Shown here: piece by piece, positions 42,344-49,801 of the stretch
Numbering within the stretch: position 1 is the first letter of the stretch
How the letters are laid out: every line of letters begins with the position of its first letter
Assembly (NCBI GenBank): GCA_010909165.1
Contig: VJWM01000226.1
Span: forward strand, 1 to 64,000
Origin: Anthoceros angustus
Taxonomy: Eukaryota > Plantae > Anthocerotophyta
DNA: 64,000 nucleotides
Direction: 5' to 3'
Translations under genes and position numbers: made by a program
The notes under the pieces: model-generated
What the model saw: only the letters and a program-made list of their open reading frames with translations
Databases searched by the model: none
Told to the model about the DNA's origin: nothing

Positions 42344-44007
42344 CTACACAGCAGTAGAATGCCGTGGGTCTTCCACAAGCCTTTCGTATCTGGCGGCTGC
42401 CGCCTGCTTTGCCTGCCGGATGTATTCCGACTTGGTCCAAGGCTCCGGAATCATCTTGAGACAAATGCCCATAGATATGAGCAGGAGACCGGAAACATGC
42501 TGTTCAGTTAGAGGTTTAGTGAAGATTATGTAGGATACTAGCAACGTCACAGCTTTCCTTGCTGTTGTCACCTGTTCGAGACCATGCAAGTATGTCAAAG
42601 AAGCAGAAACAACATAACCAGTAGGAAGCGATGGAGCATGATGTAGAAAGGGCAAGTCTTACCATGGCAGTCGTTGCTGCACCGAAAAGTGCTATCAGAG
42701 AGAGCACCGACAATTGTCCGATGAATGTGGCCATTGCCTCAAAAATCAAAACTAGATAGATGTAGGGATGCTGCACGACAGAAACGAGGTTACCTTCAGT
42801 TAGCAACTGGGAAAATCGGCTTGACTTGCCTAGAGAGCAGAGTGGGTTGGACACGACCTCAAGACCCGCGGACCAAGCCCTAAACAGCTCTCCCGTTAAG
42901 AGCATTGGCGGTATGAGTAGTGGCAGACCCACAGCAGTTGAGCAGAAGAGCATTTCCATCTGCATAGGTCAAATTAGGCTCGTCAGAAAAGCCTGGCCCA
43001 AAGGATTCATCCTCTTCCTGTAATTTCAAATCAGGGGAACAATATGTTTGAGAAGACCTGTGAAGTCGCGGGGTTCATGGTGAAAATAGCCTCCTGGAAG
43101 TTCCCTAGAAAGGCATCCAGTACCAGGGCTCCACTGACCATGACAACGCCAATCACATTGAAATCTGGCGAGGAATGGGCATCAGCTAGAGTGAAAATGA
43201 CCAGGCCTGCAACAAGCATCGATGCTGAAATGTACTCGTGCAGCGGATACTTCCGCCGAAGCCCTGGAATGAAGGCCCCCATAATCATGACCGGCAAGAC
43301 CTGCGACATGGGTGTCAGCGTTGCACTTTTTCTGTTGAAAATCACACAACAACTACGCCTCTAACCTTTTCTCTGGCCGCAAGTGCAAACCATCCAAAAG
43401 CTCACATACCTTGGTGGACTTGAACATAATCTGCGCAGGGTAGTTGAGATACATGAGAGACCCCTTCGTCAGCCCGTGAGACCCCATGAGAACAGCAGAT
43501 AGCTTCACGTATGTTCTCCAAGGATTCACAATCTGCTCCACTCGAAATCCTTGAAGTGACATAAGCGCCAGGTAAACGAATCCTTGCACAAACGTGAAGT
43601 ACCACCCGTAGCTGCAAGCTGCAACACATGAGTAGACAGACAAGCAGCCACACACAGCATCCAACAAACTTCACAACGAAAACGTAGCACGCCATCCAAC
43701 AACATTATGCCTCCTCCGAAACAATTTAGGATCTTACCTGAACTTCAGCCTGTTGTACACATACTCCTACAAAACAAACAATCCTTCCGTCAAATTCCCC
43801 CAATTCCCCCTCCAAGTCATCCCAACATTCCCACAATTGCTACCAGCTGGTGGTGCGGCACCTAAACAATACCTCACAAACGCCATTCACCATGTATCCG
43901 AAAAAGAAGCCCCCTCCGCACACTAGCAGCTGCATCCACCTGGGCTTGGAACTGAGATTGACTCCCAGCAGAGTGACATCAGCCTCCACTTTCTGCGGCT
44001 GCTTCAT
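42344..44007 (-). CDS. Nucleotide-sugar transporter, UTR2/UTR4 (SLC35B3/PAPST2-related) type, 348 aa, 7 exons
   Basis: GT-AG exons 44007-43873, 43766-43738, 43611-43410, 43300-43058, 42959-42858, 42770-42663 and 42571-42344 sum to 1047 nt. Motifs [47 protein letters not shown]. Confidence 0.92.
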
Positions 44008-45003
44008 CTTGAAGAATGAAATGCTCCGCCGGACTCGTCCGGACTCCTCAAATTCCCTCACCGCTCATGCAAACCCCGCCAATTGCACTCCTGCAGAGCA
44101 CTCGGAGTCCCTTGGCTCTCTCACGCGTCTCCTCTTGCTGAGAAACACAAAATGCCGATCATAGCCTTGATCCTCGAGACTTGCTCCCGATCAATTACAG
44201 ACTCCCGCGCGCACATCCAATTCCCTCGCCCCTCCCGCAGCAGCAGCAAGAAATTGCATCCGACTCGCAGCACGAGCCCGACTGCGAGGGCGAATTTCCC
44301 TGCACATGGGCCTTGCTTGGTGGCGTCTTGTAGCAGCCTCCCGTTTTCTTTCTTTGTTTCGACTGAAATGCCTGTCAGACGAAGCCGAAGACGAAGGACG
44401 CGACGAGACCAGACGAGACGGACGAGTCGCGAGCTTGGCAAGTCCTGACTGGCCGCCAGGGTAAACTGCAAACCTCCGTTATACATACTACAGAGAAACT
44501 CCCCAGACACGGAATCCACGTGCCGGGTTCGTTACATACAAACCGCGGGCACCCGTTATGGGACCGGGCGGCGCCCGCTCTTCCCGTCCCGTCCCGTCCT
44601 TGCCGCCGGGGATGAGGGCTGCTCGTCTGCTGCCTTCCTCGGTGAGGCTCTCGCTGCTTTGCTGCAGCATTGAATATTCTGATCGGGATGCGGAGCTTGC
44701 CTCGTCCTGATCGGCCGATTTATGTGGCTCGCGGCTTGGGAGTGGAGCTTTTTATTCTGCTCCAGCCCGTCTATCTGCCGGGCGGGATATTATTGTGTTC
44801 CTGTGTTCCCCGTTATGTACCTGAAATGGGGGAACGGTCTTCTCTCTGGCCGTGGTCGGCAGTCTCAAGTTTGCTTCTCGAGATCTGTGCTGCGACGATG
44901 ATGGGTTCTGGTGAGGTGGCGAAGGTGAGATCTGCTTGCATGGTTTGTGGGCTGTAGGACGTGGGCATGTCGGGGCCCGGGGGTTTAGCTGACGAGGTTT
45001 GTG

Positions 45004-47796
45004 ATGGCATTCGCAAGAAGTGGACCCCGAGTGGTCAACTTTGGGAACAGGAGGATGAGGGGAAGGACCCAGCCGACCAGGCTATTGGCCCTTGTGGGTT
45101 TTTTGGTTGCGGGATTTGTGTTATGGCGGATATTGCTGGGTGTTTCTTCCAGAGCAGTGTCTCGGAACTCAGCGGCAGACCTGGATGGATCCGGGTTGGG
45201 GGAAGTGTGTGATCGCAGGCAGTACCCTGCGGTGTGGGAGTTGAGAGGGGACCAGCTTACGGTTTTGATCAACGGGTTTGCTGAAGAACGGCTTCCCCTT
45301 CTGCAGTCGCATGTGAGATTCTTCTCTTCTTTCCCGATTGTGCATGCCGTGTTCATTTTGTGGGGGAATGTCTCCACTCCAGATTCGGTGCTTGATGAAG
45401 TGGAGTTCACCAGCGTGGGGGCTCCCATATATGTGGTGAGGCAGCGTTCTTTGAGCTTGAACCATCGGTTTCTTCCCAGACCCTACATCAAGACCCGGGC
45501 TGTGATGATATGTGACGATGACATCACGGTGGATGGAGATAGTTTGGAGTTCTCTTTCCGGACCTGGATGAACAATCAGAAGCAGATTGTGGGGTTTTTT
45601 CCCAGAGCGCATTCGTATCAGCTGGACAGCAACGGTTGGATATATACCAAGCTGCCGAACCAGTATTCCATCATGCTTACGAAGCTCATGATTCTGGCCA
45701 CAGAGTACTTGTTTCTCTACACTTGCAACATGCCACAGGGTGTGCGGGAGTATGTGGATCAGGGGATGAACTGTGAGGATCTGGCCATGAATTTTGTCGT
45801 CTCCAACCACAGCGGCTTGGGTCCTTTGCTTGTAGAGGGCAAGCCTCGGGACTGGGGAGACACGAGGAATTCGGCTGGGGAGATGAGCAACATAGGGTTG
45901 AGTGCAAGAGCAGGACATAGGAAGAACCGTGGAGACTGCATAACTGCTTTCCACAGGTTGTGGGGTGGGATGGAGCTCAAGTTCAGCTATGGCAAGATGT
46001 CTCCGTACAAGGAGGAGCAGGCTTTGTGTGACAAGTATGGTTATCTCATCAACTGCGATGAACCTGTAGCCTCCAAACGGCATGCTCAACGGCTTGCAGG
46101 AAAGAATTTGGTCGCTGTTAAGGACAAGTATGCATTTGTGACTGTCCTGTCTAGCAGGAAGCAATTCAACTCATCAGTGGTTTTGGCTCAATCTCTGAGC
46201 AGTTTGGGCAGTGTCCATGATATTGTCCTCCTCCTGCACCCGTCTACTGGAATAAATTTAAGGGATAGTATATTGGAACAGCATTATGATGTGGTGAGGA
46301 AGATGAAACACGCCAATGTTCCAGTGGGTTTCCATGCACTCAATACCTTGCTTCTGAGCGACTATGCTAAGGTTGTGTACATCCATGTCGAGTCGCTTAT
46401 CCTTCAAAATCTCGATCACCTATTCAACCTTGCGGAGCCAGCTGCAGCTCCCCATATTTCCTTCCCTGGTCAGTTTGACACAAGCTTGCTTGTGTTGAAG
46501 CCCTCTAAATTCACCTTCACCAAACTACTTGAATTAGTAGATGAACTTCCACTGCAGTCAAGGACCATGCACCACCTGCTTAATCTATTCTACAACAGCT
46601 GGTACCACATGTCCGCTGACCACAGACTCCCTGTACGGTACAATGCCCCAAAACTCTTCTCCACCCATCTGTCTGCATTGTCAGATATGTTTGGAGGTGT
46701 GAGCCGGACCTATAACATGCTAGGTACCCTTGCCTTAGTAAAGACTAGTAAGCCTCTGCTCACACAGATGTCGCAGGTTATGCAAGCTGACTGTGACAGG
46801 ACCGCATTCTGCAGGGCTTGGTTGGAGCTTTTCAACGATTTGAGAGGTAATGACCTCAATCCCCTTGTTAATACCACTGTCTCGTTACCACAGATGTCTT
46901 TGGTACCGGCTGCAAACACAACAGGGAATCTTATGTGGCCACCTAAGCCACATCCTCACCCAAAGAGGTGGTTCTCGGTTTCCTCAGTGGGGGCACAGTG
47001 CGGGAACAACTGCACCACAGCTATTGCCACCACCATGTGGGACGGTAGGCAGGGCATTTTTCTCCAAGGCTGGGCAGCATCTTTTGCTCGACACCACCCG
47101 CATGAAATGAGACGCCACACTTTGTTACTGGTCTCGTCCACTCTTGATGAGAGCACTTGGCAACCTTACAGTCACCTGTTTGACATGGTCCGAGTTGTGG
47201 ATCCTTTGGTGGCCAACGGCAGAGGCTCACAGATTGTTCTCCATCTGTGGAATCAGACTTATTTCAGCAAACTTGCTTATGTAGACCCCGGCTCCATATT
47301 CAAGGACAATTGTGTTTCCCTGTTCGACTATGGCAGTCCCTTGTCTGCCATTCCCAGCTCCTTCCCGCCTGATAGATTTTCAACCAGGCTAATGGTGGTC
47401 GAACCCAACGAGCAGACATTTTTGCAACTGGTGACCAAGTTGCGCAGCAGTGATGGGGGCCTAGAAGTGCAGGAGCTTCTGAACGTGCACTACAACGATT
47501 GGTATCAGCAGCCATCCTTGCACCGCATTGCTCCCTGGTTCAGCAGAGATGTGAAGGCTGTGATCAGCGGGCTAGTGCCCGATGCCACAGCACCTGAATC
47601 CAAGATTTGGTGCTTTTCAGAATCCAAATATGATCACGAATGGCAGTCTCATCCTGCATTAGTCTCCCGGCTTGCAAAGCTGTGGGAAGAGGCTCTTTGC
47701 TCCCACCAGTGGGGACAAAAACTATCTCTGTGCGGGGTAGCGGATAGCGAAAAGGTTGAAGCCCCGACGGTGCCAGCCTCCTTTGAATTTATGTGA
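45004..47796 (+). CDS. Intronless 930-aa type II membrane glycosyltransferase: GT64 domain fused to two GT8-like domains
   Basis: Signal anchor LLALVGFLVAGFVLWRILLGV. GT64 motifs QLTVLING, LNHRFLP, ICDDD, YSIMLTK, NCEDLAMNFV, RDWGD. Then two glycogenin/PGSIP-like units (YAFVTVL..LAQSL..YAKVVYIHVESL..LKPS..LLN; LWNQTYFSKLAYVDPGS..VVEPN..QELLN). Confidence 0.88.
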   Translation: MAFARSGPRVVNFGNRRMRGRTQPTRLLALVGFLVAGFVLWRILLGVSSRAVSRNSAADLDGSGLGEVCDRRQYPAVWELRGDQLTVLINGFAEERLPLLQSHVRFFSSFPIVHAVFILWGNVSTPDSVLDEVEFTSVGAPIYVVRQRSLSLNHRFLPRPYIKTRAVMICDDDITVDGDSLEFSFRTWMNNQKQIVGFFPRAHSYQLDSNGWIYTKLPNQYSIMLTKLMILATEYLFLYTCNMPQGVREYVDQGMNCEDLAMNFVVSNHSGLGPLLVEGKPRDWGDTRNSAGEMSNIGLSARAGHRKNRGDCITAFHRLWGGMELKFSYGKMSPYKEEQALCDKYGYLINCDEPVASKRHAQRLAGKNLVAVKDKYAFVTVLSSRKQFNSSVVLAQSLSSLGSVHDIVLLLHPSTGINLRDSILEQHYDVVRKMKHANVPVGFHALNTLLLSDYAKVVYIHVESLILQNLDHLFNLAEPAAAPHISFPGQFDTSLLVLKPSKFTFTKLLELVDELPLQSRTMHHLLNLFYNSWYHMSADHRLPVRYNAPKLFSTHLSALSDMFGGVSRTYNMLGTLALVKTSKPLLTQMSQVMQADCDRTAFCRAWLELFNDLRGNDLNPLVNTTVSLPQMSLVPAANTTGNLMWPPKPHPHPKRWFSVSSVGAQCGNNCTTAIATTMWDGRQGIFLQGWAASFARHHPHEMRRHTLLLVSSTLDESTWQPYSHLFDMVRVVDPLVANGRGSQIVLHLWNQTYFSKLAYVDPGSIFKDNCVSLFDYGSPLSAIPSSFPPDRFSTRLMVVEPNEQTFLQLVTKLRSSDGGLEVQELLNVHYNDWYQQPSLHRIAPWFSRDVKAVISGLVPDATAPESKIWCFSESKYDHEWQSHPALVSRLAKLWEEALCSHQWGQKLSLCGVADSEKVEAPTVPASFEFM

Positions 47797-48905
47797 ATGG
47801 CAGGCCCTGTTCTCTGGGTACAAATTTTGAGTGCAAGTGACACAGAACTATACAGATAACTGAGCATCCAATTAAATAAGTGACGAGCGGCTCTGCAAAG
47901 GGCAACCAGCCATAACAGACCTGGCACATCCCTGCTTATCCATGGCACCGTTGGCTATGATAATATTGACTGTGGAAACCTCGTGCTATCTCATAGAGGG
48001 AATCCTTGTTTTCTAAAACTGCATTGCAACCTGGAAGAAGGTGGCAATTATCTGTTCCAAGGAACGTAGGCACCATTGAGCCACCCATGCAGATGTTAGC
48101 TAGTTTACCATGCTTGGACTTCCTGTGTTCCAGGTTCGGCCATACAAGAGTACGACAAAGAGTTGGAGCATCAACTTGCTTAGGACGAATGCAACCATCA
48201 GGGGTACGTAGCCCTGTCAAGGCCATTTCACGCGACACCGGCTGTCTCCTCTTCCCATGTCTAAGCCTAAGCAGTGCGTGAAGGTTACTGCCTAGTCCAT
48301 GAGAGAAGAATCAAGAAGAAAAAGAAGAAAAAAAAAAAACGAAAAAAACGAAACAAATGGCCATGTACCAAAGAGTGGGAAGAACGGATCTGTACCTTAA
48401 GCTCCAAGGCACGTGACCAGGTGCTCAGCCGCCACATCATTCCTCTCTACCGCTAAGTACTACTGAATCAAGCACAAGGTCACATGAGAGGGTACCAAAG
48501 CGTCAAAAGGAAGGCCAGTGCACTGCTACACCAATTCGCTCTGTATAGATTCACCCTAACCCTCTGAGTAGCGACGGAAAAAAGGATGGCAATACGTCCA
48601 TACCAGACCAGAAAAAAGCCAGGCAATTCAGTAGCAAGCGTCATACCCGTCCCTACAGCAGTAGCCTTCTTGAAAAGTGGCAAGGGCGGAAGACCTAGAC
48701 AGCGAGGTCACAAAAGGTGTTCAAAGGCATACATGAGGAAAGGAACCACACGAGCTTCATTGTTTTCACGCAGGAGAAAGCGAAGACAAGCAGCAGGTGT
48801 TGCCATTTGGTTCCCAGGAGAGAGGACTAAACTCCGTAGCTCTCAGTACAATTGGAAAGACAATGAATTCTCATGAGCAACAAAGCGCAGCGGCGGCAAC
48901 GTCAA

Positions 48906-49801
48906 TCAGTTCGCGACTGCATTCTTTGCCTTGCTATCCCGCAGACCGCCCCTGGGAGCGACGCCATTAACCTTCCCATCCTTCCTACCCCCTGTCTCCT
49001 CCACCTCTTCGGGCAGCCCCTCCGCCTCCTTATCATCCAGAATCTCGGACGGATCATCCTTCCTGTTCTTCCAGTAGTCGTCCAGATCCGAGTCCAGCGA
49101 CGAGGCGCCGAACTTCTTGTCCTTGAGCCTCCACTGGTCCAGATCCGCGTCCAGCGCCTCCTTGGTGAGATTCTTCTTCCCCCGGCCGCCGCCCCAGCCC
49201 TTGCCGCCCCGGCCCCTTCCCCGGCCCCGGCCGCGCCCCGGCCGAAGAAGCCCTGCGCCAGCGGCGGCCCGCAGGCCGCTTCAGAATCCCGCTCCTGCAC
49301 CCCGAGCGCCTGCGCGTGCTTCCCGCCCCGGCCCCAGCCGCGCCCCGGCCGAAGCCCTGCGCCAGCGGCGGCCCGCAGGCCGCTTCAGAATCCCGCCCCT
49401 GCACCCCGAGCGCCTGCGCGTGCTTCCCGCCCCGGCCCCGAAGCCCTGCCCTGCGCATACTGCTGCCCGTAGTGCTGCTGGTGCTGGTGGTGGTGAAGGT
49501 GCTGCCCCGGCGCTCGCAGCAAGCCCGGCCCGTAATTCCCCCCGCCTCGCCACGAAGAGTACGCCACCGCTGCGTGCCCGCCGTCGTCCTGGTAGAACAC
49601 TTGCCCCAGCCCCGCAGCTCGGTAGGCCGCTCCCCGGCCTCCCTCCCGGTGCATGTTCCTCCCTCGCCCGCTCCTCCCCAGCACCTTCCCCTCCTCAAAC
49701 AAATCCCGCTTCCGCTTCCACTGCTTGCTCTCGTCCTGCTGCCGTTCCTGCCCCGCTCTTGGAGCTCCCACCCTTTCACAAGATGCAGCAGCTCCTGCCA
49801 T
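48906..49801 (-). CDS. RGG-rich protein with C-terminal FoP-duplication (CHTOP/ALY UBM-like) motifs; frameshifted in the GC-rich repeat
   Basis: The C-terminal frame reads RGKKNLTKEALDADLDQWRLKDKKFGASSLDSDLDDYWKN...AVAN*, preceded by RG repeats. An ~105-bp tandem duplication at ~49235-49445 disturbs the frame. Confidence 0.62.

Follow-up and report, generated by a model that had tools for sequence, protein, structure and literature searches.

A membrane-anchored GT64 glycosyltransferase carrying a tandem of putative GT8-fold pseudoenzyme domains in Anthoceros angustus

The window analysed here is a stretch of 64,000 nucleotides (nt) from Anthoceros angustus (contig VJWM01000226.1 of assembly GCA_010909165.1, forward strand), within which all positions are given, and the coding sequence at 45004..47796 (+) encodes a protein of 930 amino acids in which an N-terminal membrane anchor, a GT64 glycosyltransferase domain and two glycogenin-like domains of the GT8 fold, here called GT8-A and GT8-B, follow each other in a single chain. 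The GT64 domain keeps its catalytic motifs and both GT8-fold domains lack theirs. The best explanation for the protein as a whole is probably a transferase with a single activity, belonging to the GT64C3 lineage (At1g80290), to which a pseudo-GT8 tandem is attached as the relic of a bifunctional ancestor.

The open reading frame (45001/45004..47796 on the plus strand, 930 codons and a stop counted from the ATG) is single and uninterrupted, and an in-frame stop is located six codons 5' of the ATG. The coding sequence is supported by the list of open reading frames, by full-length orthologues and by colinear RNA-type contigs from the sequencing runs X1, X2 and X16; the RNA status of these runs was deduced from the splicing pattern, the run records themselves not stating RNA. 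X1 is an exact match to the window and its contigs show RNA behaviour: the contig for a neighbouring gene on the minus strand omits 43612-43737 and 43766-43871, segments with CT..AC ends and hence GT..AG on the minus strand, and ends at 44298, the depth is 0 between 44299 and 44585, and a contig of 3,754 nt then covers 44586-48303 with 0 differences and 0 joints, continuing past GT64 through both GT8 domains. The same transcript pattern was observed for X16 (44656-48617), a relative with 90-95% likeness. X18 contains the introns of the neighbour and crosses the gap at 44299-44585 and is therefore DNA. Contigs of the RNA type from three related organisms (X1, X2 and X16) are colinear across the entire reading frame, and as the X1 contig runs without joints, the mRNA is unspliced and spans all three domains. 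The gene is real and is transcribed as an unspliced, full-length mRNA of ~3.7 kb.

The sole strongly hydrophobic stretch of the protein is found at residues 27-47 (45082..45144, +; Kyte-Doolittle maximum of 2.46 at residue 27), where AlphaFold2 (AF2) places a helix at residues 25-46, and this single transmembrane anchor presumably gives the protein a type II topology. The GT64 domain at residues 85-334 (45256..46005, +) matches Pfam PF09258 with an E value of 2.7e-64 and 217.3 bits (cut-off 21.3) over profile positions 1-242 of 245, and it is matched by EXTL3, EXT2, EXT1 and EXTL2 with E values from 3e-32 (EXTL3) to 1e-24. DDD at residues 171-173 (45514..45522, +), the DxD metal/nucleotide-sugar motif of GT64, NCED at 256-259 and H305/R309/C312 align with EXTL3 and are invariant across 15 orthologues; in the motif table compiled for the family, DDD is intact in every member possessing a GT64 domain. 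Membership in GT64 is thus given both by the full-domain profile match and by the DxD, NCED and H..R..C segments.

The C-terminal part consists of two complete domains of the glycogenin fold, GT8-A at residues 372-619 (46117..46860, +) and GT8-B at residues 669-912 (47008..47739, +). Sequence searches against the PDB matched residues 376-620 to glycogenin and to Gat1, the Skp1 alpha-galactosyltransferase of family GT8, at E ~1e-15, and residues 744-846 to Gat1 at 4e-13, with glycogenin matching GT8-B at 1e-7, and GT8-A and GT8-B share 34% identity across 92 residues (E 4e-11). Pfam gave no GT8 call (PF01501) for either domain, even at E values up to 10, but recognises the algal orthologues, and given this missing call, homology was taken from the PDB sequence searches and the fold. 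An AF2 model of residues 362-930 (predicted local distance difference test, pLDDT, 77; predicted template modelling score, pTM, 0.80) superimposed with glycogenin-1 over 234 residues for GT8-A (model 11-258; Z 26.0, root-mean-square deviation 2.6) and over 228 residues for GT8-B (model 308-551; Z 26.5, root-mean-square deviation 3.1), in agreement with Foldseek. As pTM is 0.80 for the tandem and 0.51 for the full-length model, the mutual placement of GT8-A and GT8-B is confident and that of GT64 is not. Between GT8-A and GT8-B lies a low-confidence linker (residues 620-668; 46861..47007, +; pLDDT < 50) with a conserved WPP motif. The original prediction of an intact, intronless frame with a transmembrane anchor, a complete GT64 domain with DDD and two glycogenin-like domains was thus borne out, most of its domain boundaries lying within ~100 nt of ours; the end of GT8-A, which it had set at ~46680 instead of 46860, fell ~180 nt short.

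Both GT8-fold domains carry other residues at the positions where catalysis would be expected. In GT8-A, DxD, GDQG and the metal-binding His read HVE, TMHH and K, and in GT8-B DPG, VQEL and C-F. YIHVES (46378..46395, +), with H-V-E, and YVDPGS (47278..47295, +), with D-P-G, which had been proposed from the DNA as degenerate DxD sites, each align to the DxD of glycogenin and Gat1. Two catalytically competent glycosyltransferase domains per chain, as in the EXT1/2, LARGE and chondroitin synthase type, are thus not found here; judged by motifs, they are found in the algal, haptophyte and Corallochytrium relatives. GT8-A and GT8-B of Anthoceros are accordingly filed, from their motifs, as putative GT8-fold pseudoenzymes and not as GT8 enzymes, and as GT64 alone keeps its motifs, the protein would be a single-activity enzyme with a pseudo-glycosyltransferase tandem.

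The same architecture was found again in over 15 independent genomes and transcriptomes. The best match, at 61% identity, is a transcript-size contig (P0001), and full-length relatives were found in the liverworts Marchantia (annotated as 'glycogenin'), Riccia and Calypogeia, the moss Ceratodon, the lycophyte Diphasiastrum, in Chara and in the Zygnematophyceae Mesotaenium, Closterium and Spirogloea. A word-indexed search with the C-terminal half led to 2 proteins only, and an exhaustive profile search was used instead; it revealed GT64-GT8-GT8 in the haptophyte Diacronema lutheri (P0080, with P0088 being similar) and, in the holozoan protist Corallochytrium limacisporum (P0076, 690 aa), a transmembrane anchor followed by a GT8 tandem without GT64, in which GT8-A is canonical and GT8-B degenerate. 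This makes the tandem either more ancient than the streptophyte fusion or more mobile. Other orders occur in single proteins as well, with GT64-DUF6492-GT8 in P0091 (1134 aa) and GT8-GT64-GT61-like in P0116 (1041 aa), which suggests that GT64 and GT8 were fused repeatedly and independently. Of the three outcomes named with the original prediction as refuting it, transcripts that end after GT64 and C-terminal regions without a GT8 fold were not observed, whereas the possibility that the architecture might already be common and annotated turned out to be partly correct: it has been annotated automatically in Marchantia, Riccia, Ceratodon, Diphasiastrum, Chara, Mesotaenium and a haptophyte, and 'GT8-GT64 double module enzymes' have been listed for the red alga Delisea pulchra (preprint 10.64898/2026.03.31.715562). 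No characterised protein of the GT64-GT8-GT8 architecture was found in the literature searched, as had been supposed, and a review of Golgi tandem fusions names only GT47-GT64, GT31-GT7 and GT8-GT49. The architecture is therefore catalogued in public proteomes yet uncharacterised, and it is not unique to Anthoceros.

The distribution of motif states within the family suggests when they changed. In GT8-A, DVD, GDQG and HF are intact in Chara, Corallochytrium, Diacronema and the Zygnematophyceae except Spirogloea, where they are degenerate; in every land-plant member DxD, GDQG and the His of HF..KPW are all gone. The predicted pseudoenzyme state of the GT8 modules thus agrees with the motifs of the Anthoceros protein and not with the ancestral state of GT8-A, which is canonical in algae. 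The residues at the former DxD site of GT8-A are HVE in Anthoceros, DVH in its closest relative, EID in liverworts, DLN in mosses and DVE in Diphasiastrum, and they vary by lineage with no substitute motif kept, which favours a loss of catalysis over a change in its mechanism. GT8-B lacks an intact DxD, GDQG and His in all members. A tree of the domains recovered A as monophyletic (90/94) and B as monophyletic (97/94), with A and B jointly sister to the sampled glycogenins (100/99) and with the embryophyte A-domains as a clade on long branches (95/94), indicating that the tandem goes back to one old duplication and that B degenerated early. Outside the family, the nearest relatives of the GT8 modules that could be named are glycogenins of animals and fungi. 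In both the domain tree and the GT64 tree, the Anthoceros protein and P0001 group on an embryophyte branch of their own, which is distinct from those of the liverworts, the mosses and the lycophyte.

A search with GT64 only returned standalone proteins of about 320-370 aa that are 45-62% identical over 93-100% of the query, with 57-62% identity for ferns, Ginkgo, conifers and Selaginella, and 45-53% for the angiosperm 'glycosyltransferase family protein 64 C3' of the At1g80290 type. Every named short match is a 'GT64 C3', in a candidate set without GMT1 (C4) or GINT1 (C5), in line with the earlier assignment of the N-terminal domain to the At1g80290 type. These standalone proteins stop at a C-x-K-x-G-x-L-x-C-D motif just ahead of the start of GT8-A, represented in Anthoceros by CDKYGYLINCD (46027..46059, +; alignment with short-form sequences), so that their ends coincide, as had been noted, with the start of the GT8 part in Anthoceros. 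For Selaginella, ferns and seed plants, the GT64 part alone was seen, and all GT8-B-bearing fragments among the matches listed have their nearest relatives among the proteins of mosses, liverworts or Zygnematophyceae. The maximum-likelihood GT64 tree follows the species tree and places the short forms as one clade (90/85) among the fusions; most simply read, the short form derives from the fusion by loss of the tandem.

Taken together, the protein would be a type II glycosyltransferase of the Golgi-type membrane class and of the GT64C3 lineage, in which only GT64 appears catalytic, presumably transferring alpha-hexosyl or alpha-N-acetylhexosaminyl residues by a retaining, metal-dependent mechanism. 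Behind GT64, a glycogenin-like GT8 domain would have been duplicated internally in ancient time. The loss of DxD, GDQG and the metal-binding His from GT8-B may predate the divergence of streptophytes, haptophytes and Corallochytrium. GT8-A would have served as a working second transferase in the ancestor, as it still seems to do in most algae, and these three motifs would have disappeared from it in the stem lineage of land plants. Purifying selection would then have retained the pseudo-GT8 pair as a rigid two-domain body, whose most likely role, presumably non-catalytic, may lie in binding the acceptor glycan or what the former GT8 step had produced, or in serving as the scaffold of a complex. 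The tandem would later have been discarded in Selaginella, ferns and seed plants, which kept the GT64C3 protein of ~330 aa. No description of a lineage-specific death of GT8-A or of an origin of GT64C3 by loss of a tandem was found in the literature searched.

Several points weigh against this explanation. The packing of GT8-A on GT8-B is taken from a single AF2 model built from 14 sequences, and the loss of catalysis is judged by motifs, while metal binding by His and Glu is conceivable in principle. The GT64 tree was built without GMT1 or GINT1 as outgroup and gives Diphasiastrum a weak position (80/58), which bears on one versus two losses of the tandem. No seed-plant tandem was present among the matches listed from the searches made, which comprise best hits only. 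Synonymous divergence (dS) from the closest relative is saturated or uncomputable, so that dN/dS gives no proper estimate and nonsynonymous divergence (dN) is to be read in relative terms only. Finally, no biochemistry on any family member, At1g80290 included, was found in the literature searched.

Among the other explanations, it is conceivable, if rather unlikely, that the ancestral form, like that of present algae, was a two-activity enzyme making two successive alpha-linkages, either the glucuronic acid (GlcA)-then-hexose core of glycosyl inositol phosphorylceramides (GIPCs) or an alternating all-alpha glycan, polymerised as by the EXT or LARGE co-polymerases, and that land plants re-used the dead tandem as an intramolecular lectin module, similar to a glycogenin dimer, that presents the acceptor to GT64. 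If true, this would predict the substrate class of the orphan At1g80290 of Arabidopsis. A related reading starts from the GIPC core itself, to which IPUT1 (GT8) adds alpha-GlcA and GMT1 or GINT1 (GT64) add alpha-mannose or alpha-N-acetylglucosamine: the two steps would have been fused in the algal ancestor, and the dead GT8 modules of land plants might hold the GlcA-inositol phosphorylceramide acceptor for GT64. In the core, a GT8 enzyme makes the first of two successive alpha-linkages and a GT64 enzyme the second (PMC9113257), and the fusion of GT64 and GT8 in several orders across eukaryotes argues for a recurrent functional coupling. However, the GT64 domain falls by name into a third, uncharacterised clade, C3, distinct from GMT1 and GINT1, the GT8 modules have glycogenins as their named relatives outside the family (in a comparison set without IPUT1), the family extends to a haptophyte and a holozoan protist, and the transporter gene next to the Anthoceros gene is not syntenic in Marchantia or Ceratodon. 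The assignment, reasonable as an analogy, is one of family names, and we consider the GIPC reading improbable.

It was also considered that the GT8 tandem might be functionless baggage heading for deletion, with the GT64 part alone being of importance. Its catalytic motifs are gone, Selaginella, ferns and seed plants are without it among the listed matches, and it evolves ~3x faster than GT64, dN against the closest relative being 0.12 for GT64, 0.35 for GT8-A and 0.34 for GT8-B. The linker reaches 0.82 in the same comparison, however, so the tandem does not reach half the dN of the linker. Its ~570 codons have stayed open without stop or frameshift in the hornwort-like, liverwort, moss and lycophyte lineages, the whole reading frame remaining open throughout the bryophyte lineages, and dozens of positions, many of them non-catalytic and spread over both GT8 domains, show no variation from Chara through Anthoceros. 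A degenerate GT8-B has moreover been kept since before the split of streptophytes and haptophytes. The tandem therefore appears more relaxed than GT64 yet clearly constrained, and a tandem without function is quite unlikely.

A still enzymatic GT8-A, using a non-canonical H-x-E metal site and making the Anthoceros protein bifunctional as in algae, is very unlikely. Divalent metals can be coordinated by His and Glu, the fold is complete and the NLDHLF segment following the motif is invariant, but the third metal ligand, the His of HF..KPW, is Lys, GDQG reads TMHH, the D-V-H, E-I-D and D-L-N of the closest relative, liverworts and mosses show no conserved replacement, and the Pfam GT8 model that recognises the algal orthologues misses the domain here. 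That two adjacent genes or an assembly join were read as a single frame is rejected with near certainty; nothing in its favour was found, one RNA-type contig with 0 differences crosses the frame, the architecture recurs in the independent genomes and transcriptomes mentioned above, and the Marchantia orthologue is also contained in one exon.

Returning to the preferred explanation of a single-activity GT64C3-type enzyme with a pseudo-GT8 tandem, the protein can be compared with several known systems. The At1g80290-type GT64C3 proteins share the GT64 motifs and the C-terminal Cys motif but, at ~320-370 aa, miss the entire GT8 tandem. EXTL3 and EXTL2 have a homologous GT64 domain and are type II Golgi proteins, although the substrate here is not heparan sulfate. 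EXTL3 retains its GT47 domain after loss of activity and EXTL2 has lost this domain entirely (PMC9178029), a trajectory in which the partner domain first dies and is then dropped and which parallels that of the Anthoceros family. The exostosin partner GT47 is, however, an N-terminal, inverting domain of the GT-B fold, whereas the partner here is a duplicated GT8, C-terminal, retaining and of the GT-A fold. With glycogenin-1/2 and Gat1, both C-terminal domains share the full-length fold (Z 25-26.5) and sequence homology but not DxD, GDQG or the metal-binding His; glycogenin and Gat1 are cytosolic, whereas the Anthoceros protein is membrane-anchored and presumably luminal, and the glycogenin homodimer contrasts with two unequal copies in one chain. 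IPUT1 and GMT1/GINT1 represent these two CAZy families as well and work successively on one glycan, but they are separate polypeptides, and the GT64 domain here is of a different clade by name. The Delisea pulchra enzymes likewise combine GT8 and GT64 modules in one uncharacterised protein, for which a role in wall polysaccharide synthesis was proposed; their order is given as GT8-GT64 and they are likened here by description only.

Upstream, the gene lies head-to-head with a spliced gene on the minus strand (42344-44298) that resembles nucleotide-sugar transporters of the UAA family (PF08449), its introns 43612-43737 and 43766-43871 being backed by the RNA-type contigs; an atlas look-up with one of its exons returned 'UAA/TPT-type transporter'. 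The two transcripts start at a distance of 288 nt from each other, and the untranscribed gap between their 5' ends (44299..44585; X1 contig ends, depth 0) is presumably the shared promoter region of two divergent genes. As the neighbour of the Marchantia orthologue is SecY and those of the Ceratodon gene are OST3/6 and eIF3h, the head-to-head transporter was rejected as functional evidence; the pairing is a local arrangement and not a conserved linkage. The 5' untranslated region of the glycosyltransferase gene comprises ~418 nt (44586..45003, +; start of the second X1 contig, 0 differences) and the 3' untranslated region at least 507 nt (47797..48303, +), the X1 contig ending at a skipped repeat at 48304-48354 and the X16 contig extending to 48617. 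This repeat is short, contigs of higher depth from 48355 onwards probably represent a separate transcript, and a Pro/Ala-rich low-complexity open reading frame is located at 48873-49472. The Marchantia orthologue (L001 8001-10937) has one exon as the Anthoceros gene does; the Ceratodon gene (L003 8001-11191) spans ~450 nt more than its coding length and therefore contains at least one intron.

The finding is not a new principle, as the exostosins already show tandem glycosyltransferase fusions and inactive glycosyltransferase partners. It does provide a graded series, from two domains that appear active in algae, through one apparently active and two dead domains in bryophytes and a lycophyte, to one domain in Selaginella, ferns and seed plants, which would lend itself to studies of how pseudo-glycosyltransferase domains are first kept and later shed, and Marchantia, Physcomitrium and hornworts are genetically tractable. 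To our knowledge, GT64C3 with At1g80290 is the only plant GT64 clade without an assigned function. As its ancestor would have been physically coupled to a working GT8 transferase, the search for its substrate may be narrowed to glycans in which an alpha-linkage formed by a GT8 enzyme lies next to one formed by a GT64 enzyme.

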